Positions 13,901 to 48,995 of a DNA stretch of 64,000 bases are shown here, in pieces. Positions within the stretch are counted from its first letter, which is position 1. Each line of letters opens with the position of its first letter. The translations under genes and the position numbers were made by a program. This DNA is from Trichosphaerium sp. ATCC 40318. Its lineage: Eukaryota; Protista; Tubulinea. The stretch is taken from assembly GCA_038496445.1 (NCBI GenBank), contig JALMLS010000423.1:62001-126000 (forward strand), given 5' to 3'. Under the pieces are notes generated by a model. It ran no database searches. It was given only the letters and a program-made list of their open reading frames with translations, and was not told the DNA's origin.

Positions 13901-14239
13901 GTTACCGAAGAACCTGAAGATACTAAAACTGTTGCCAAAACCACAACTCAAACACAAGTTGGCGCTTCAGCTGTACAGAATATCAAAAATTCTGATGTTG
14001 GTACGTTTTTTGAAGGACATCACAAAAAGATATTTAGTTTTCTAACTCTCTTTTAAACAGATTCTAACAATGGTGGACCAAAGAAGAATAACAGCCTTTA
14101 TATCATTATTGGTGGTGCTGTAGGCGGTCTTATTGTTCTAGTAGCTCTTGTAGTCATCGTTGTTGTTCTAGTGATGAAGAAGAAGAAGCCAAGCAAAGCT
14201 CCTCAAGAAGAACAAGGATACCAACAAATGGAAGACTAA
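10942..14239 (+). CDS. Type I membrane MACPF/perforin-like protein: signal peptide - MACPF - Pro/Thr stalk - small globular domain - acidic tandem repeat - TM - short tail
   Basis: Signal peptide MHRAVLLALVAVFVACTFG. IPGADQMQRGFDIL. MACPF signature YGTHFITGGTFGG. Exons join in frame through to TM LYIIIGGAVGGLIVLVALVVIVVVLVM-KKKK and tail ...EEQGYQQMED, stop at 14237-14239. Confidence 0.85.
13382..13693 (+). repeat. Coding tandem repeat, 8 x 39 bp (DMDDMPLDDYEPE)
   Basis: Unit GACATGGATGACATGCCTCTTGACGATTACGAACCRGAA read directly; variation is mostly synonymous. Confidence 0.95.
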
Positions 14240-23976: not shown

Positions 23977-25322
23977 TCAGAAATGGAATGATTTAGCTTC
24001 AAAAGAATCGAAACAACTCTTACTATCACCACCTGTTGGTGATGCAGTAAACTTAAAATCAAAACTAGCATTGAATTTGAACAAAACAATCTCATCATTC
24101 TTAAACTCACGTTTACGAATAACATCCCCTTCCATGTTGTACTGTGTTTCAAAGCCTTCTCTTTTACCATCTTTGAATTCAACACTTAATTTCAATTTGC
24201 CATTAGTGTGGAATTCCTTTGCTTCTCCTTCTAACAGTCCATTGACGTACTGCCGTTCTTCAAGAATTGATCCATTTTGGTGAAAACTCCTGTAGTCTCC
24301 ATTACGTACTCCCTTGATATAATTTTCTTCAATTGACAGCTCTCCTGACTCATGATAATGTTTAGAAGTACCAGAAAGTACACCATCTTAAAATACTCTT
24401 CTGAGAACCATTGGTTCATCGGTCTCCTTCCAAACTTTCGGTCGATTAAACTGAGGTCTTCCTTCCGTCGACCGTTTTTGTACCACTGTTTACGACATTT
24501 TATGGCTCCACTAATATCATATGTACTATGTATCTTTAGCATTCCACATGGATACCATTCCTTGAGCTCTGTAGGTTGTTTATGATAAACCAGTGTTCCA
24601 TCTGCTACATAAGATTTACACTCTTGAACAACATCATGTTTGTATGTCGCTTCTGTCTGGAGGTTTCCGATACTCTCATGCCATGCTTTATACATGCCTT
24701 CTTTTAGACCATTGACGTATGTCACTTCTAGTGAAGGAGATCTATTTTTGAAGTAACAAACAGTTTTTCCGTGTTTTAACCCATTTTTGTAGTAAGAACC
24801 TCACGTGGTTTGTTATCTTCAATCTTGCCAAACCACTCAACAACCTTACCATCTAACTTGCCTTCTTTGTAATGACTTGTACGCGAGCTTAAAATAGTAC
24901 TACTGTCCCAACGCGTACTGGGACGTATCTCAGTTCGTTCTCCATGTTTAAGGCCATTCTTGTAGTGAGCTTTTAACATCAATAAGTTTTCAGAATCAGA
25001 ATCCCAAACAATGTATTGTCTCAGCTCTCCTTCCAAAATGCCATTCGAATAAAAGGCTGTTGTACGAGTAGAGCTAACAGTTAAGAAAGGTTTGAAACTA
25101 AACGTGAATAAGCCATGTTTTTCCAAGTTGTTATTAAATCGAGAAGTCACTGCCGTTTGAAAGCATAACAACGGCCATTTCTGTTCAACGTCTTCGTCTA
25201 AGTTGTAGATAGCGTGGTGTAACTCGATTGGTAGATCAAGTAAAGCCAACGAACTACAAAACAACTTAAAACACGTTTTTACGCATGAAATCAAACCTTT
25301 TTGACTCTTTCACAGCCGACAT
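23977..25322 (-). pseudogene. F-box-like + MORN2 (YwqK-like) repeat gene, copy 1, with two 1-nt frameshifts
   Basis: ATG 25322 (MSAVKESK), 43-nt intron, LLDLPIELHHAI, MORN2 units (YKNGLKHG, YVNGLKEG, FKDGKREG). Single-base deletions near 24798 (REV/SYY) and 24388 (YFK/DG) relative to the paralogues. Confidence 0.8.
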
Positions 25323-25656
25323 GTCCTTCTTGGAAATAGTAACTTGATTGTCACGATGTGTCTACAGCGGTGTTTTCCAAAACCAGGTGTTTACCAACTA
25401 TCAACTGTTGCGTAGGGGGCAGTTTATAAACAAAAAATAGATAGCTTAACCACTTTAAGACATGTACAAAATGTGATTGTTTTCTTCGAAATATTTGCGC
25501 TAACTTGACGTATGTGAACGCACTAGTTTATGCATGGTTCGCAAACAAGATATGGAAGTAGTCGGAGGTGAAATACCAAAGTCTTGTTGCTACATCACTT
25601 TTTCTTTGAGCTTAAAAATAGTGTTACATTTGTTTTATTATTTTCTTGTTTCTGTT

Positions 25657-34872: not shown

Positions 34873-36423
34873 ATGGCAGAAAACGCAAACATACAAGAAC
34901 AACAGATAAATCTACTTCGCGCATTTTATGAGAGGCAAGGGCAAAGATTGAACGAAACTGTTACTATTGCGATTGCTGGTGCTGTAGGCTCCGGTAAATC
35001 AACTTTAAACAACTCAATACGTGGTGTACAGTACGACTACCGCAATCCTGACAATGGAGCCAGCCCAGTTAATTCAGAGGAAGAAACTAAAGAAGTGATA
35101 AAGTATTATCATCCTGTACATACAAACATTTGTCTGGTTGATTTACCTGGATATGATGGTACTTTTATAAGGCGAGAAAACTATGCAGAGCGAGTTGGTA
35201 TGGCTGATTTTGATCTCATTATATTGGTTACGGATGGTATATTCACACAAGGCGATGAGTTCATTCTCGATGAAGCTCAGAGGTTGAATAAACAAGTTCT
35301 TTTTGTTAGAAATAAGATAGATGCTGCTATTCAGCAAGATAGGGTATGTCGTTATGTTACTTAATACTACCAACCTGTTAAACTAACTTCATAATGTAGC
35401 GTGATAGACCAGGCAGAACTCCTGAAGAGCTCAGAGAAAGCTATCTTCAATCATTCTTGAGACGGTTTCCAAACTGTGTATGTCCTATTTTGAGTAACAT
35501 ACTATCTTACTTCGTACTCTATAGCCATATGCAGTTCCTGAGAGGTTCCTTGTACTCTCAGCTTGGCTTGAAAATAGCACAAAATACGATTTTCCAAGGT
35601 TGGAACTAGCTCTCATTAATTACGCACCAGCTGTACGAACAAAAACTAGTAACACAGTTTTAATAGAAAGATGTTTAGGCAAAGCGAGAAGCGATTTTAA
35701 ACGCAATACAAGGTTGCTCTCCGGAAGCTATTAACTTAAAAGCTAAACTATGTTATGACAGGCTACCAATATACGTGCTAATGTCTGGTTTGACTAGCGC
35801 AGGTTCTTCTGCTATACCTTTGACATCCTTTTTGACTATACCAGCTGGTGCAGCTGCAGAGTATTATGTTGAATCCGCAATGATTAAAGAATGCAATTCA
35901 ATCTTCGGTCTTACAGAAGATAATATGGTATTTTTAGACTTTATCAAATGGGCAAAGAGGTCTTCTAGCAATATATCAAGTCAGGTGCACATCATTCCAC
36001 TTTTTTTTCCGTTTTCTTCTTTTTTCTTCACATCTCCATCCACGTGTTACTCCATTGTGTTGTTAACTTTTTCTGTAGTTACTTAAAACTTTTATTGAAC
36101 AGTCAGCACAACAGACAGGTATCAAGACAGTACAATATGTAGCACAAGAATTAGTTACAAAGGGATCACGGCGATATAAGTTATTCGGACCACGAAAGCA
36201 TATTACTAAAATTGTCTATAAGGCTGTTGAACAACAAGCGGCTGACACTGCATTCCAGAGTATGTCTAAAATGGTGCTATCATTTCTACCCATCATTGGA
36301 CCTGTATTATCTGGATCAATGAGCGCCTCAATCACATACTTTGCGGGAAGCACATACATCGCGCAATGTATTGAGCTTTGTAAAGAGATGAGAAGATTGA
36401 GAATGCAACGAGAACATATGTAG
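34873..36423 (+). CDS. Immunity-related (IRG/IIGP-like) GTPase with hydrophobic C-terminal helices
   Basis: G1 IAIAGAVGSGKSTLNNSIRG, Y.HP...NICLVDLPG (G3), FDLIILV, FVRNKID (G4), FLVLSAW..YDFPRLELAL. C-terminal FLPIIGPVLSGSMSASITY. Stop TAG at 36421-36423. Confidence 0.8.
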
Positions 36424-39085: not shown

Positions 39086-39987
39086 GTCCTTCTTGGAAAT
39101 AGTAACTTGATTATCACGATGTGTCTACAGCGGTGTTTTCCAAAACCAGGTGTTTACCAACTATCAACTGTTGCGTAGAGGGCAGTTTTTATAAACAAAA
39201 ATAGATAGCTTAACCACTTTAAGACATGTACAAAATGTGATTATTTTCTTCGAAATAGTACTTCTCGAACATTGTAAAATAGCTTAACCGTTTTTAAGCT
39301 ATGAGCAAACTGACGTACGATTTGACGTGAAATAATGCCTTTACAACTCTGCAAGCTTGCTGATAGTGTACCCTTATGGAGTACTTTACATAAGCATAGG
39401 AACAGAAGGTCACGTGCATGCTACTAATAGGAGTGGCATTAAAATGTAGGCTTAACGTTGTTACGGTGTCGACTCTCTTAAACGTTTCCGCTAGTGTACT
39501 GCCTTTGCGTGCGTAGGAGACAAGTACGACTACTTGTACTCGTTTTAGGAGCGTTGTTTCCAATGTAAAACATGTGAGGTACACTCAATCCAAGCCACAA
39601 CTTCTACAAAGAGCCTTTGGTCGTTCTAGTGTTTGTCATAACGACATTTGCTGGTGTTCTTGAAGAGTACTCACAATAAATACCAACTGTGTGAGAATGA
39701 AATTTATTATTACAGTTAGTTGCACGCTTGAAAGTTTTGATTGCAGCATTTCAAAGTATGGAAAAATTTCCACTTTTCACATGCAAATCACGTGATTGTC
39801 AAGACTGCGCAAATGTAGTAAATTCACAGCCGGGTATTTGTTGCACTATTACAAATACAGTATTTGAACCCAAAGCATTATCATATACCTAAACAGATAC
39901 TAACCAGGTGGTGTATAAGTGGGTTTTATTTAATCTTAATTCAACAACGCTGTTGTTTAATTGGTTACAAGTTAACCGTGTAACACC

Positions 39988-40932
39988 TCATTTTGTGTAC
40001 CTAACAAGATGAAAACTATCTAGTGATTTAATAGCATCTGTAACTTGTTTGCAATGGTGCACAGTAATGGTATGAACTCCAGATAACGCTTTGATACCAT
40101 CATCTGTAACATTAGGACAAACCCATAAGTAAATGGTATGAACTCCAGATAGTGCTTCAATACCAACATCTGTAACACCTTGACAATTAAAAAATCTTAT
40201 TGTATTAACACTGGCTAATGTCTTGATGCCATCATCAGTGACATGTTCACAACTGAGCATGTCAATTTGATGAACACCAGATAAAGTTTTGATACCATCA
40301 TCTGTTACATTACGGTTATGCAGTGAAATTGTGTGAACACTAGCGAGCGCTTTGATACCATCATCTGTAACGTTATCACAATCTGTTATTGAAATGGTAT
40401 GAACACCAGATAACGCTTTAATACAATCATCTGTAACACCTGGACAATTGTTTAAGTCGATTGTATGAACGCCAACTAACGCTTTGATACCATCATCCGT
40501 AATGTTATTACAATCCTTTATTGTAATTTCATGAACACCAGCAAGCGCCTTGATGCCATCATCTGTAATTTGTTGACACTCGCTTATATAGATTGTGTGG
40601 ACACCAGCCAAAGCTTTAACACCCTTGTCTGTCACTGTTGCCTTCCATAATGTGATCTTGTGTATTCCAGCAAGTTGTACGAGGTGATCATCAGTAACAT
40701 TCTCACAACTACGAAAGTCAATGCTGTTAACAATGTTGAGCGTTGTAAAATCGACATCAAGCGAGTCATTACTCTTTAGTGTAAGATCTTTTACTCCTTG
40801 TAGGTACTTGAAGTGTTTTTGCTTGATAGAGAATAGAAGAATAACGTTATTCGTCTTTATGAGGTGTGGTTGCTTTTTGAAAAGCTCTTTAAGCTTTTTA
40901 GCCGTTTTAACGATTGATTTCCCTTTGTACAT
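39988..40932 (-). CDS. Intronless LRR protein (VTDDGIKALxGVHTI repeats), paralogue of 41998-42762 lacking the F-box
   Basis: About 10 repeats of 24-25 aa. The cap KTAKKLKELFKKQPHLI..FRSCENVTDDHLVQLAGIHKI is nearly identical to the neighbouring gene. First ATG gives MYKGK. Confidence 0.75.
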   Translation of the reverse strand: MYKGKSIVKTAKKLKELFKKQPHLIKTNNVILLFSIKQKHFKYLQGVKDLTLKSNDSLDVDFTTLNIVNSIDFRSCENVTDDHLVQLAGIHKITLWKATVTDKGVKALAGVHTIYISECQQITDDGIKALAGVHEITIKDCNNITDDGIKALVGVHTIDLNNCPGVTDDCIKALSGVHTISITDCDNVTDDGIKALASVHTISLHNRNVTDDGIKTLSGVHQIDMLSCEHVTDDGIKTLASVNTIRFFNCQGVTDVGIEALSGVHTIYLWVCPNVTDDGIKALSGVHTITVHHCKQVTDAIKSLDSFHLVRYTK

Positions 40933-41997
40933 GTTTGACTTGATGCTGTATTGCGTTATTTGTAATGTGCAACGTAGCAAGGTTACGTTATGTGGTCTTT
41001 ATAAGTATTTCCACTAAAATATTTGGGCGAAATACAGCGGATCTCTGAAGCAACCAAATCTTGAACAAACTGCACTTAAACAAACCGAAAACTGACATTA
41101 CGTATGTACAGTGCCAAAACAGGTCTAGGCATTACCTTATACGCCTACATACTAATAAATTACGCTATTATTGTTACAACTAACGCTACGTATCTCTCCA
41201 CGCGTTTTCATCTTTCACGTGCCCTTCAACGTTTCTGATGGCGACTTACACTCATTTAAACTCGTATAAGAACCTTTGCACGTTTTGTATGTCTAAACCG
41301 CTTTCTTTTCGTTGTATTCTTAGGTAGCTGGTGTTTAAAGCACCCAAAGTCATTTGCGACACTCAGTTGCGCTACCATCGCCCTAGCAGCAATCTTGACC
41401 ATTATATTACGGTTGCCCGCTGTTCGATTTTTACAGAACTCCTAAACCTGCTCGCAATGAGATTCGTAATGCTGCTCCTACCACCTCCCTACGCCTCTGC
41501 TTTCCATCTAATGATATGGAAACCATTTGTTTGATGTCGCTTCTTTGTTTCAGCGGCATACTAAAACCACTGCAATCACGTGATATTTGCATAGATAAAA
41601 GCTGGAACAGGTTTTGATTAATTTGTTAAATGCAAACCCACTCTACGTTCCATATTCCAACTACATTGCTTGCTATGACTGATCTAGAATCTTACGATAG
41701 CACTTTAGAGAAACCATAGATTTCGGATTGATTGATAAAAGAAAAGGAACGTGTTTCTGAAAAGTGCACATATGACAAATACCTCAAATGCACATCAATT
41801 GGTAGAGTATTAACTGAATACTTGCATGAATAAAAGGCGGCTCTGAAAGGGTACTGCATACCAAAGAGAGTAAGTACACTTCTCTTACATAGTATCGTTT
41901 CTTTATTTGTACACCTTCAAAAAAGCCTAATCAAAAACTAGCTGTTGGTATCATAGCTCAACAACTAGAATCATAACGCTAAATTTGCCTTGCTGGT

Positions 41998-42762
41998 TTA
42001 AATCATCAATATGTGCAATGTATGAACACCAGACAGTGCCCTTATACCATCATCTGTAACACGTCCACAAAAGCTCATCGAAATAGTATGAACTCCAGAT
42101 AGCGCTTTGATGCCATCATCTGTTACACTACAGCCACATAATGTAATAGAATGAACGCCAGCTAGCGCTTTAATACCCTCATCTGTCACTTGTTTGCAAT
42201 TGCTTAGCTTAATTTTATGTACACTAGCCAGCGCTTTAATACCATCATCTGTAACTTGTTGACAATTTCGTAAGTCAATTGTGTGGACACCAGACAACGC
42301 TTTAATACCCTTATCTGTCACAGATGCATTCCATAATATGATCTTGTGTATTCCGGCAAGTTGTACGAGGTGATCATCAGTAACATTCTCACAACTACGA
42401 AAGTCAATGCTGTTAACAATGTTGAGGTTTGTAAAATCAACATTGAGCATGTCATTTTTTCTTATTTTTAGATCATAAACTCCTTGCAGATACTTGAAAT
42501 GCTTTTGTTTGATAGAGAATCGAAGAATAATCTTATTCGTGTGTATGAGGTGTGGTTGTTTTTTGAAAAGCTCTTTGAGCTTTTTAGCCGTTTTAAGGAC
42601 AATTGTCCTTCTGCTCACGTATCCCATGTGCTGTGTTGCGATATTTGATATCAATTTCGATGTGTGAACAACTGAGTGCATAGTTAGGAGCGAAACATAC
42701 CGCAGAATATGAACAACGACTTCAATAGGTATTTCATCAAAGAATGCGCTGTTTTCGTTCAT
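41998..42762 (-). CDS. Intronless F-box/LRR protein
   Basis: FDEIPIEVVVHILRYV..VVHTSKLISNI F-box, then the shared cap and about 6 LRRs. Confidence 0.82.
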   Translation of the reverse strand: MNENSAFFDEIPIEVVVHILRYVSLLTMHSVVHTSKLISNIATQHMGYVSRRTIVLKTAKKLKELFKKQPHLIHTNKIILRFSIKQKHFKYLQGVYDLKIRKNDMLNVDFTNLNIVNSIDFRSCENVTDDHLVQLAGIHKIILWNASVTDKGIKALSGVHTIDLRNCQQVTDDGIKALASVHKIKLSNCKQVTDEGIKALAGVHSITLCGCSVTDDGIKALSGVHTISMSFCGRVTDDGIRALSGVHTLHILMI

Positions 42763-43420: not shown

Positions 43421-46400
43421 ATGATACTAAAAGTACATACAGTAGTCCTTTACTTAATACTGGCTTGCGCTAGCGCCCAAATGGCAAACGTTACAATTTA
43501 TAACGGCCAAACAGGTTATTTCTCTTCAAGTGTTATTTCCTCGCTTGCACTAATGCTAGTCATTTCGTAGGCACCCTAGAACGCGATTTTCAGAGTTGGT
43601 CAGGGTCTTCTGTCAATCTAAAAGACACAACGGTTCGTTTTTTTATAAACACACTTGAGCACGTGTTTTTTTGGATTTTGACGTGCTTGGTTTTTAGTTT
43701 GTTAAACAAGGTGGCAAGTATTCGTTGAGTTTTGACCCTCTTGTTACAACACTGACGCTTCATGGTAACTTTGTCGCAGAAATGAAGTATCTCACTGATC
43801 TTACTTTCTGGTACGAAGCACAAAGACCACTCCGTTATATTTATTAACTGTTGTTACTTTGTTGACTCTCCTGTAGGATAAGCGGTGGAAGTCCAGGTGG
43901 ACAAGACCTTAATTTGGAGCTCAACGGAGGCAAAGGTTTGTCTAGTTTCAAAATTACTTTTAACATGATTTTATATCTAGTTGGTAAAGTATTGACCCTG
44001 TCTAACGTTATTGGTAATAAGCTACCTGGAAATACATGGTTGAAAGGTACTTGTAATCGCTCAGTTTTTTGTTTAGAAGAAAAGAAATGTGCTGTTTTAA
44101 GGGCCCTTAAACACAAAGTGTTCAGGACATAAAAGTTAACAATTTGCAGTTTCATTTCCTTTCGCAAAATTTGGAGTTGAAGATGAAAACGCTGTTCTAT
44201 TCTCTCTTTCATTCATGCCCTCTTCTGTACGTATCAAAGTGTTAGTTGTAAATTATAAAAAGTCTATTCGCTTACGAGTGCATAAGGGGAGTGGTAATTC
44301 AAAAGTTTTTTTCAGCGATATTGGTTTCAGCGTAAATCTGCCAAAAGCGCAACCTGTATTTGTTTCAATTGACAGTTCAGTTTCAAAGCCACTATCACCT
44401 TATATCTTTGGCGTAAACCTGGCAACAGAAGCGCAACTAAATAGCGGAGGCTATACCGTGAATAGATGGGGAGGTGAAGTAAACAGTAGGTACGCTAAAG
44501 AGTGAACAACTTTACCAGCAAAATATAATTGTTCCCTTTGTTAAAGGTATGCATGGAAAATTGATGCTGCTAATATGTGTCACGATCGATTCTTTGAGAA
44601 TACACCTCATCGTACCGCTATGCAAAGTGTAGAAGCTTGGCCTACCAATACAACAGCAGATGAGTTTGTTGATAATTCGACAAGGTAAAACTAAAAAACA
44701 CAGGATTCCTTGCTTTTCTTTAATTCTTTTTTATTGTTTGTACTGATAGTGTCAATAGAATGAATAGTGAGGTTATGTTGTTGACACCAACTATTGGTTG
44801 GCGTGCAATAGATCGACAAATAAGGTACCTAAAGACCATAATCTACGCTGTTTTCAATCTCTTCCAAACTCTTAACTTTTTCGAAAACGGCAAAGTATTA
44901 GTGATTGTTCCACTTTGCATAAGAAAATTTGAGTACATAAAAAACTACGTCTTAGCAAGTTTACGGTTGCCTAGGGTTCTTTTTTTTCTGTGTTTCACTT
45001 TTGTATCGCTAACATTCTTTTATTAGATGTGGCTTCTCCGTTAAAAAATATGGACCTCAACAAAAAGTTGATCCAGAACATCCCGATTGTGGTATTGGTA
45101 TTAAACCTGATGGATCATTCGTTACTGGTAATGATCCACATGATACAAGTGTTGAAACCCCTCCTACATATAATATTGAATGGATAAACCATCTTGACAA
45201 ACTTCATGGAAAAGGTGCTGTGAGATGGTTCGCTCTTGATAATGAACCATGTACGTGTTCTTTCTTATTTTATTCTTACACAATGCCTTCAAAAACGTTC
45301 AATTCCTGGCTGTTCCAATTATTATTATTCTTCCCGTCACTGTTGAGTAAACTATGCAAAAACAAACTCGTTCAAAGTATCCTTTGGATTTATCGTTTCT
45401 CATTTTTTTCGACTAGGCATTTGGAGTGGAACTCATAGAGATGTACATCCTGAACCTCTAACATACGATGAGTAAGATAACATCATATCCTTATATTTAT
45501 CTAATCAAAAATCTAGGCTATGGAATAAGACAGTATCATACGGTGGCCTTCTTAAACAAAACTTTCCGAACTCTACAATCTTTGGACCTGTCACAACGTA
45601 CTGCTTTCTTAATTATCTCTCGTACCAATAGTCAATTAATCTTTGTCTAGGGGTTGGTGCAACTATATGTTCTCTCCAACAGACGGTTGTAAGATAGGCA
45701 AAGACCGTCTAGCTCATGGTAACATGTCTCTAACAGAGTGGTAATAATTTTTTGAATTCTACCAGATGAAATTGTTGCTTCTACGCAAAATGATTTGTCT
45801 ACAAGCAAAACCTGATTTTATTTTACTACGCGAGTAGATGGTTTTACATGCTTCTAAGAAAATTGGAGTTGCTGTGCATTTCTATTCTTTGGTAACAGAA
45901 GTTCGTTTTAGGTACATTTATAAGATTGCTGAACATAAAAAATCAACAGGAATGCAGATTGTTGATGTAATAGATATACATACATACCCTTATGTAATCC
46001 CATTTCAGAACGATGATTTGGATCCCGTCACAACATTCCTCAGATTCAGGTACCTGAACAACGTCTAACAACAAATAAGAAAATCAAGAATCACGTGTTC
46101 TTCATCTGTACACGTGTAATCGCTTAAATCTCTTAGCATCTTTAGAATTCTACCAACAACTCATCTTTTTCATTTTTTTTTTTTCATTCATGAAAACACG
46201 CTTGTTCTTGGGTTCTTAATTAAATAATTGCTATTTAGGGGTACCAGACCACTATGGGATCCTAACTTTACAACAGTGACATGGTTTGTTGAAAAGATAT
46301 ATATCCTTGAAAGGATCAATGGATGGATAAAAAAGCATCTACCTAATCTAAGAACATCCATTTCTGAGTTTAGTTACGGTGGAGATGATCTTATAACGGG

Positions 46401-47128
46401 TGCTTTAACAAATGTTGATGCACTTGGTGTATTTGCTGAAATGGGTTTGTATGCATCAACACGTTGGATTGTACCGAAAGTAGGAACTCTGACAGAGCAA
46501 GCATACTTGATTTATTTGAACTACGATAACAAAGGTAACCACGTGTTTAATTTGAGACTTTTCAAACGCTAGATCAAAGTGTATCACTTTGGTTCCTTTG
46601 GTTGAGCATCTTTTTTATTACTTAAACAAGTAATGAAGAAATACATTGAAGTTAAGGATTATCCATGTTCAACGTTAACGTTAACTTCAATTGTTTAAAC
46701 TAGTTTGCTTTTTTGTTTTTGTTTTTTGCTCTCTTACTTGTTGACTTTGCTTACCTGATTTCTACATTAGGGTCTAGTGTCAGTGGTTATAGTATAAAAG
46801 CCAAATCATCACATATTGATGTTGCAAGTGCATACGCTTTTGTTGATAAGAAAAAATCAAAGATGTTTGTTGTAATGGTTAACAAAAAGAAAGATCCTGT
46901 TCCAATAACCATCGATACTTCAGATGTTACAAGCAACGGACAGGTTAGATTGAAAAATTTTGTGACATCAGCGACGAACTTGTTGAGTTGACTTTGGTTT
47001 AGGTTACTTTATTCCGATTCTCTGAGACAATCCGTCTATCAAATGTTGGTTCGTCAAGTGTTCAAGATGGGTCTTTGAAAGTAACATGTCCTGGATGGTC
47101 AGCTACACTTGCTGTAATAGACTTTTGA
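43421..47128 (+). CDS. Secreted glycoside hydrolase family 44 (endoglucanase/xyloglucanase) with an N-terminal CBM-like domain, intron-rich
   Basis: Signal peptide MILKVHTVVLYLILACASA. PLSPYIFGVN, NRWGG..SRYAW, WFALDNEPGIWSGTHRDVHPEP (acid/base Glu), DVIDIHTYP, TRPLWDP, ISEFSYG (nucleophile Glu), DALGVFAEMGLYASTRW. Stop TGA at 47126-47128. Confidence 0.88.
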
Positions 47129-47502: not shown

Positions 47503-48724
47503 ATGTCTTCGAAAGAGTCAAAAAGGTTTGATTTCATGCGTAAAAACGTGTTTTAAGTTGTTTTGTAGTTCGTTGGCTTTACTTGATCTACCAATTGAGT
47601 TACACCACGCTATCTGTAACACAGATGAAGAGGCGAATGAGAAATGGCCGTTATTATGCTTTCAAATGGCAGTGACTTCTCGATTTAATAACAACTTGGA
47701 AAAACATGGCTTATTCACGTTTAAACATTTCGGTTATTTCGGCACTATTCGCTGTATTCGTACAACAGCGTTTTATTCGAATGGTATTTTGGAAGGAGAG
47801 CTGAGAAAATACGTTGTTTGGAATTCTGATGCTGAAAACTCATTGATGTTAAAAGCTCACTACAAGAATGGCCTTAAACATGGAGAACGACTTGAGATAC
47901 ACTTCAGGGGTCGTGTTATTAGAGTTACAAGCTCGTGCACAAGCCATTTTAAAGAAGGAAAGTTAATGGCAAGGTTGTAGAGTGGTTTGGCAAGATTGAA
48001 GATAACAAACCACGTGAGGTGTCTTACTACAAAAATGGGTTAAAACACGGAAAACGTGTTTGCTACTACGATGATGGATCTCCTTCATCAGAAACCATTT
48101 ACGTCAATGGTCTAAAAGAACGCATGTATAAAGCATGGCATGAGAGTACCGGAAACCTCCAGACAGAAGCGACATACAAACATGATGTTGTTCAAGAGAG
48201 AAAGAAATGGTATTCAAATGGAACACTTGCGACGCATAATACATATGATATTAATGGAGTCATTGAATGTCATAAGAGGTGGTTTAGAAACGGTCAACAA
48301 AAGGAAGAGTGCCACTACAAACTCGGCAAAAAGAACGGTTACTCAAGAAAATGGTTTGGTTCAGGACAACTTCATTCAGAAGAGTATTTTAAGGATGGTG
48401 TACTTTCTGGTACTTCTAAGTATTATCATGAGTCAGGAGAGCTGAAAATTGAAGAAAATTATATCAAGGGAGTACGTAATGGAGATTTCAGGAGCTAGCA
48501 CCAAAATGGATCAATTCTTGAAGAACAGCAGTGCGACAATGGACTGTTAGTGTAACGATAAGCTAGATGAAGTCTCGAGGATTGGATTCATTGAATACAT
48601 AGAGTATTCACGTGCTTAGAGAGACTCTGAATCATGTAGTTTTGATTTCAGGCTACCTGTGTCACCAACAACAAAAACTGATGCAGATAGTAAGAGTTGT
48701 TGAAGTAAATCATTCCATTTCTAA
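47503..48724 (+). pseudogene. F-box-like + MORN2 repeat gene, copy 3; frameshift near 47965, premature TAG at 48496-48498, deleted 3' part
   Basis: ATG 47503 MSSKESK, 43-nt intron 47526-47568. AAGTTAATGGC versus AAGTTAGATGGC in copy 2. The family tail SFDF..SPTTK.DADSKS and AATAAA are retained near 48640-48740. Confidence 0.82.
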
Positions 48725-48914: not shown

Positions 48915-48995
48915 GTGTTGAGTTTGTAAAATCAACATTGAGCATCATTCTTTTTATTTTTAGAGTACACTCCTTGTGGGTACTTGAAATGCATA
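48915..48995 (-). pseudogene. Short relic of the LRR-family cap
   Basis: TGTTGAG..TTTGTAAAATCAACATTGAGCAT...ACTCCTTG..TACTTGAAATGC matches about 42420-42502 (HFKYLQGV..MLNVDFTNLN) with deletions. Confidence 0.65.

Follow-up and report, generated by a model that had tools for sequence, protein, structure and literature searches.

Three MORN_2 repeat genes of Trichosphaerium sp. form a block-wise mosaic, probably left by old interlocus gene conversion

Gene conversion between loci both homogenises paralogs and yields new combinations of their sequences (PMC3966223, PMC3728101). In Caenorhabditis paralogs (PMC3966223) and in GOT1 of the copepod Tigriopus (PMC3728101), it proceeds by short, non-reciprocal tracts passed between dispersed or clustered paralogs, requires stretches of high identity, leaves homogenised stretches alternating with islands of divergence, and creates new combinations. 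Here we describe a locus that resembles these cases in each of those respects: a family of three genes, termed copy 3, copy B and copy A, in a 64,000-nucleotide (nt) stretch of DNA from Trichosphaerium sp. ATCC 40318 (contig JALMLS010000423.1), hereafter the window. It differs from them in that the predicted product is a MORN_2 repeat protein, the host is a protist, only one copy of the three is intact, and the polarity of exchange is unassigned. A reading of this DNA from its letters alone (the sequence-only reading, whose copies 1 and 2 are our copies A and B) had proposed that copy 3 is a patchwork of the other two, generated by a system that shuffles segments among substrate receptors of Skp1-cullin-F-box (SCF) complexes. 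We consider it probable that interlocus (ectopic) gene conversion or recombination, acting in the past on a small, decaying, lineage-restricted family, left this block-wise switching of nearest relative behind.

The window is eukaryotic nuclear DNA with a GC content of about 36-38%. Searches of its whole length with blastn and tblastn identified three members of the family and no more, dispersed within 25 kb and differing in flanks and orientation. The duplicated unit is the gene alone, with three-way homology spanning the ATG to about 25-40 nt past the stop. From its sequence, the predicted architecture comprises an N-terminal domain of about 50 residues, followed by MORN_2 beta-hairpin repeats in an array and, at the C-terminus, a short tail. 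The genome of the marine amoeba Trichosphaerium sp. has been described as having a GC content of 37.7%, a mean intron of 75 bp and virus-like genes in which no domains are commoner than F-box and MORN (PMC10521059); the GC content of the window, its short introns and its genes with F-box/LRR (leucine-rich repeat) and MORN domains agree with that description.

Along its length, copy 3 alternates repeatedly between A and B as its nearest relative. Blocks are given in copy 3 numbering, with identities taken from a three-way DNA alignment (Table 1); in that alignment each peptide listed in the sequence-only reading sits where it was claimed to sit and matches the copy it was claimed to match. At 157 of 197 variable sites copy 3 agrees with one of the other two (95 B-like, 62 A-like), and these informative sites fall into only 30 runs, compared with 76.1 +/- 6.0 expected (permutation p<5e-5). 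When variable blocks were delimited blind to site type, the mix of site types differed among them (chi2=105.8, 12 degrees of freedom, p=4e-17; permutation p=5e-5). The A-like block at 48120-48201 ends at a 54-nt in-frame insertion found in A alone. The description of copy 3 as a patchwork of the other two therefore stands as regards the alternating blocks, but not as regards the whole gene, which also contains a block in which all three copies differ (47915-47956) and a patch of its own: ten of the 33 sites at which copy 3 is the odd one out (A=B) fall within the 24 columns of 47616-47639 (binomial p=1e-8), and no donor for the patch at 47616-47642 was found in the window.

Synonymous divergence (dS) changes together with these blocks. 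In patches where A is the odd copy, dS is 0.42 between copies 3 and A and 0.49 between A and B, against 0.08 between copies 3 and B; in the patch where B is odd, it is 0.64 between copies 3 and B and 0 between copies 3 and A; and in conserved blocks all three pairs lie at 0.055-0.10. Overall, values of 0.42-0.65 in odd-copy patches compare with 0-0.10 elsewhere, a difference of 5-10 fold between adjacent blocks. A jump of this size within one 1-kb gene implies that adjacent stretches differ in age and, combined with an odd copy that changes by block, argues for recombination or gene conversion rather than selection on point mutations; in this respect the proposal of segmental exchange between dispersed paralogs was well founded. 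Synonymous and non-synonymous divergence jump together in the patches (ratio of non-synonymous to synonymous divergence, dN/dS, about 0.8-0.9), which is what a difference in age would produce. Even the close pair is about 5-6.5% apart in the two large patches and 9-12.5% apart in the smaller patches, and near-identity is confined to an 86-nt block at the 5' end and to a flank upstream of A and B. With close pairs 5-12% apart, these exchanges are old and not ongoing.

A stricter form of the patchwork claim, in which copy 3 was built from tracts of copy A, a pseudogene, and copy B, accounts for the strong clustering of its agreement with those two copies and for the absence of any synonymous difference from A across 48120-48201. 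A maximum-descent test of the 3SEQ type is indeed significant with copy 3 as the child (p=0.006), but the same testing is as significant or more so with B or A in that role (p=5e-5 and 1e-4). There are also blocks in which A equals B and copy 3 is odd; the clustering of sites unique to copy 3 requires at least one patch without a donor in A or B; and the 1-nt deletion in A at alignment column 626, which falls inside the weakly A-like stretch 47987-48055, is absent from copy 3. Since all three choices of child are significant and A=B blocks exist, copy 3 is not a special recipient and direction is not assignable. The network of exchange is symmetrical, with 3-B, 3-A and A-B tracts all present, and no copy is "the" mosaic. 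We therefore regard the casting of copy 3 as product and of copies A and B as donors as unlikely, although of the alternatives considered here it fares best.

Under the reading we favour, that of past exchange among all three copies, short tracts of about 25-220 nt would have been copied between paralogs, presumably through homologous-recombination repair with a paralog as template, and the exchanges would have been resolved in stretches that the copies hold identically, such as the YxNGxxxG repeat cores. The simplest history, its order of events likewise inferred, would start from old paralogs (dS about 0.4-0.65 where unhomogenised), which pairwise exchange partly homogenised at dS about 0.05-0.1; for some patches, import from unseen family members located in other parts of the genome would be an equally allowed source. 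The sequence-only reading had placed the switches at conserved repeat joints, and the major ones do lie in or beside stretches identical in all three copies, at the YxNGxxxG cores. This placement is expected for any homologous exchange and is partly built into the method: a breakpoint has to be put somewhere between two informative sites, and of the 883 ungapped columns of that stretch 686 are invariant, so that switches at conserved joints are largely unavoidable.

The 5' ends of the genes show a different pattern. An 86-nt stretch is identical in all three copies (47510-47595, 39075-38990 and 25312-25227), taking in most of exon 1, all 43 nt of a putative intron and the opening codons of exon 2, while the coding sequence just 3' of it differs by 2-6% among copies. 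RNA folding of this stretch gave no signal (z=0.1), and a scan of it for bacterial promoters and terminators, irrelevant for a eukaryote, gave background levels. Its identity could reflect recent homogenisation or constraint on the 5' end. Copies A and B alone have in common a flank further upstream (Table 1), 99% identical across the 99 upstream columns compared, and no counterpart of it occurs upstream of copy 3; the blastn match between A and B that reaches through this flank has 85.9% identity over 912 nt in all. The first 200 coding bases of A and B are 98-99% identical, whereas further inside these genes there are patches with no more than 50-70% identity. The likeness of A and B in flank and 5' coding sequence suggests a recent exchange or duplication that took in the promoter.

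Each copy has an ATG at the equivalent place, out of frame with the main open reading frame (ORF). The putative GT..AG intron would link an exon 1 of 23-26 nt to exon 2 in frame, and its removal would place a short leader ahead of the LLDLPIEL motif, of a length that agrees with the N-termini of two related transcript products, P0147 and P0134. The searches took exon 2 and each fragment of the broken copies separately and unspliced, exon 1 being too short for a search of its own. As assembled, copy 3 is a pseudogene, carrying a frameshift, an in-frame TAG, a scrambled C-terminus and a shortened tail; the 85 nt of its third break stand in place of about 160 nt of MORN repeats in copy A, and its tail remnant has 79-85% identity to the tails of B and A. 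Copy A, the longest and the one with the full set of C-terminal repeats, is disrupted by two 1-nt deletions, one at alignment column 626 and the other at 1052 (adjoining window positions 24798/24797 and 24388/24387). Copy B is the sole intact copy, with 334 codons from 39015 over exon 2, and is without about 3-4 C-terminal repeats owing to an in-frame deletion; its own-lineage changes in conserved blocks (8 non-synonymous, 1 synonymous) do not suggest purifying selection. The copies are separated by 11 indel blocks up to alignment column 1080, of which eight have lengths divisible by three and the other three are single-base frameshifts. We conclude that the family was coding sequence during most of its evolution and that the breaks came late.

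Table 1. Coordinates of the three gene copies, their parts and the blocks of the mosaic (window positions)
Feature	Position	Strand	Description
Copy 3	47503-48724	+	Flagged as mosaic; blastn extent 47511-48550/48743
Copy B (copy 2 of the sequence-only reading)	39085-38011	-	blastn 39074-38173 plus 38116-37992; 88% identity to copy 3
Copy A (copy 1 of the sequence-only reading)	25322-23977	-	blastn 25311-24231 plus 24067-23958; 80% identity to copy 3
A-B common upstream flank	39086-39257 (copy B); 25323-25493 (copy A)	- (copy B)	blastn reach to about 170 nt upstream
Copy 3, putative exon 1	47503-47525	+	ATG plus 20 nt
Copy 3, putative intron	47526-47568	+	GT..AG, 43 nt; alignment columns 124-166, invariant across the three copies
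Copy 3, exon 2, first piece	47569-47965	+	Conserved N-terminal domain and first MORN-like repeats, up to frameshift
Copy 3, break 1	47965-47966	+	One base fewer between these positions than in A and B (alignment column 570); frame shifted
Copy 3, exon 2, second piece	47966-48495	+	Shifted frame; MORN_2 repeats
Copy 3, break 2	48496-48498	+	In-frame TAG; sense codon in copy A
Copy 3, beyond TAG	48499-48551	+	Still homologous to copy A; meets a further stop
Copy 3, break 3	48552-48636	+	85 nt, unaligned to A or B (40-42% identity)
Copy 3, C-terminal tail remnant	48637-48724	+	Original exon 2 frame, internal deletions; TAA at 48722-48724
Copy B, putative exon 1	39085-39060	-	
Copy B, putative intron	39059-39017	-	
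Copy B, exon 2	39016-38011	-	Including stop
Block, copy 3 unique	47616-47642	+	Alignment columns 214-240; A-B 92.6% alike, copy 3 56-59% to either
Block, B-like	47723-47762	+	87.5% to B, 65% to A
Block, B-like	47889-47914	+	88.5% to B, 61.5% to A
Block, all different	47915-47956	+	60-69% pairwise
Stretch, weakly A-like	47987-48055	+	8 scattered sites with B alone different
Block, B-like	48056-48099	+	91% to B, 68% to A
Block, A-like	48120-48201	+	95% to A, 59% to B; 6-nt gap in B
Block, B-like	48202-48421	+	93.5% to B, 72.5% to A; five in-frame gaps in A
Block, A-like	48422-48551	+	91.5% to A; large in-frame deletion in B

The assignment of the repeats to MORN_2 (Pfam PF07661) is secure in copy 3, where the ORF at 48019-48498 reaches 53.8 bits (cut-off 29.6; E=7e-15). 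Copy B (24.9 bits) and a piece of copy A (16.9 bits) score below the cut-off and are both homologous to copy 3 by alignment; scores of 40-44 bits were obtained for three relatives, P0147, P0134 and P0001. Consecutive strand pairs are seen in AlphaFold models whose mean confidence score (pLDDT), 32 from a single sequence and 52 from a five-sequence alignment, is in both cases too low for a fold search. The label of F-box, by which the sequence-only reading made these genes SCF receptors, found no such backing. The N-terminal domain, of the form LLDLPxEL...WPLL...TSRFN..LEKHG, is invariant in the five-sequence alignment at L, L, P, E, D, WP, L, A, TSR, N, LEK and G, and contains the L-P-x-E motif that leads helix 1 of the F-box. 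Compared with F-box receptors of SCF complexes (PF00646, PF12937), the LLDLPxE(L/I) start motif is alike and the likeness ends after 13 residues. The first 70 residues of exon 2 from all three copies matched no Pfam family at E<=10, and neither did P0147 and P0134; in the same scan of neighbouring LRR genes, the gene at 62209-63927 matched F-box and F-box-like models and that at 41998-42762 matched no F-box model. A profile of the domain searched against PDB sequences returned no F-box protein, and hhalign, run against the N-termini of those two LRR genes, of which only 62209-63927 matches F-box models, aligned 13 columns over the LLDLPxE motif at 9% probability. In the low-confidence AlphaFold model from five sequences there is one helix, at residues 20-36, and residues 1-19 lie below pLDDT 50. 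The LLDLPxE(L/I) motif and a hydrophobic position also open the F-box of gene 62209-63927, the encoding DNA differing between the two families. Compared with the F-box/MORN expansions reported for Trichosphaerium (PMC10521059), MORN_2 is held in common, but the N-terminal domain here is not a recognisable F-box. By sequence comparison it appears to be a conserved, lineage-restricted domain with no assigned fold and an F-box-like first motif.

An exhaustive HMMER search of 1.84 billion representatives retrieved 6,969 proteins that match through the MORN_2 repeats; among the matches whose sequences were read, the N-terminal domain was common only to the MMETSP transcripts P0147 and P0134. Both have 35-36% identity overall, with one 19-residue stretch of the N-terminal domain nearly identical in P0147. 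In a word-indexed protein search with copy B no match exceeded 31% identity, a protein search with only the N-terminal region gave no match, exact-protein look-ups gave none, and the family alignment used as a query recovered only the two MMETSP transcripts.

Several considerations weigh against gene conversion as the explanation of the mosaic, or limit its force. The comparison comprises three sequences only and is without an outgroup, and polarity as well as four-gamete and pairwise homoplasy index (PHI) tests need more; the permutation nulls treat sites as exchangeable; and the mosaic is known from assembled sequence, not from reads. No donor was found for the patch unique to copy 3, for the all-different block or for the odd patches of B, which match neither A nor copy 3, and when the source of the divergent patches was sought in other repeats of the same genes and in the F-box/LRR genes, no better match emerged in the window. 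A search of 5.8 billion proteins disclosed no further family member; IMG/VR, interrogated by DNA pattern and protein, held no family member and no viral contig with the N-terminal domain; and none was found in JGI metagenomes (protein and DNA pattern) or GTDB genomes (DNA pattern).

One broader proposal would keep an adaptive role for the exchanges: as an (F-box-like)-MORN_2 family lying beside F-box/LRR genes and an IIGP-type GTPase gene, these copies might belong to an innate recognition repertoire of a poorly sampled marine protist, in which conversion between dispersed copies, including broken ones, was selected to renew the variable surfaces between repeat cores, the three copies being an old snapshot. 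We hold this to be very doubtful. More improbable still is the dedicated system envisaged in the sequence-only reading, in which copies including pseudogenes would serve as cassettes repeatedly copied into an expressed SCF substrate receptor. Conserved repeat cores separated by variable segments would suit modular exchange, and the neighbourhood does contain fast-evolving, immune-like families (F-box/LRR_6 genes, an IIGP-type GTPase). However, none of the copies is a partial unit, as all three possess an ATG, a putative intron, a stop and a short 3' flank of their own; close pairs are about 5-12% apart, with only the 86-nt stretch and the A-B flank near-identical; a self-comparison of the window revealed no common flanking repeat or signal outside the gene units other than the A-B flank; there are only three copies in 64 kb; and membership in the F-box family is unsupported. 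Nor do the copies bear out the generation of new functional receptors, as the mosaic copy is broken and the intact copy B has patches common to neither of the others. The analogy drawn with the trypanosome variant surface glycoproteins (VSG) and the lamprey variable lymphocyte receptors (VLR), to which conversion from chicken immunoglobulin pseudogenes may be added, holds in formal logic alone, that of segments from silent or broken copies entering another copy of a repeat-built binding protein. Unlike those systems, this locus has neither a single expressed acceptor nor incomplete, promoter-less cassettes, and it lacks flanking recombination repeats; its tracts are old, and the mosaic copy is dead. 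The evidence thus points to old, sporadic exchanges and decaying copies over programmed receptor diversification.

An artefact of assembly or polishing, in which a chimeric consensus arose because reads of one paralog were mapped to another by mistake, is about as improbable as the dedicated system: patch sizes of 25-220 nt are within short-read range, and errors in the consensus could account for the single-base frameshifts of copies 3 and A, but a polishing chimera would equal its donor, whereas the close pair differs by 5-12% in every patch, the patches carry in-frame indels of their own, and the copies differ in flanks and orientation. Least credible of all is independent divergence of three duplicates under diversifying selection and without exchange, which would fit variable segments between conserved cores, as expected of a binding surface, and the high dN/dS of the patches (0.8-0.9), but not the 5-10 fold rise of synonymous divergence in the same patches or an odd copy that changes by block, which no single tree with rate variation gives.

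Other features of the window were noted in passing. About 200 nt 3' of copy 3, a 77-nt fragment (48916-48992) is 85.5% identical to part of an F-box/LRR gene (42420-42502) and appears to be a stray piece of another local gene family. Directly upstream of copy 3, exon-like ORFs at 45838-46991 (+) have weak matches to the GH44 and GH30 beta-sandwich families (E about 5e-3) and probably form one multi-exon glycosidase gene. The LRR_6 genes, all on the minus strand, lie at 39988-40980, 41998-42762 and 62209-63927, only the last also matching F-box models; it is a 572-codon ORF with many near-identical LRR units (self-matches 85-88%) and a duplicated F-box start motif, and the genes at 40330-40962 and 42019-42647 have 79% identity. 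An IIGP (PF05049) type GTPase gene occupies 34873-35364 (+) and downstream exons (E=9e-19); its short GT...TGTAG intron of about 55 nt (35346-35400) is comparable to the putative 43-nt intron of the MORN_2 family. An ORF of tandem acidic repeats at 13376-14056 (+), with units like MDDMPLDDYEPED and DNA self-matches of 81-88%, is overlapped by repeat-derived ORFs on the opposite strand, and a proline/threonine-rich ORF lies just upstream (12434-12940). At 55633-57447 (+) a 604-codon ORF, very rich in Glu, Arg and Lys and coiled-coil-like with EEEARLREEE runs, has no Pfam match. A tRNA-Ile of eukaryotic type (anticodon AAT; 58465-58539, +) is the sole Rfam or ARAGORN match in the window, and exon pieces across the window match the PRMT, mitochondrial-type SSB, CH, SH3, GH44/GH30 and IIGP-GTPase families.

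The phenomenon is an ordinary, old gene-conversion mosaic, of a kind already known from other paralogs (PMC3966223, PMC3728101). If only the supported part of the argument is true, this locus would add one more clean case of interlocus gene conversion shaping a repeat-protein family. For annotators it means that the three copies are not placeable on a single tree and that two of the three are pseudogenes. It also brings to notice what appears to be a lineage-restricted N-terminal domain, joined to MORN_2 repeats and without a characterised relative.

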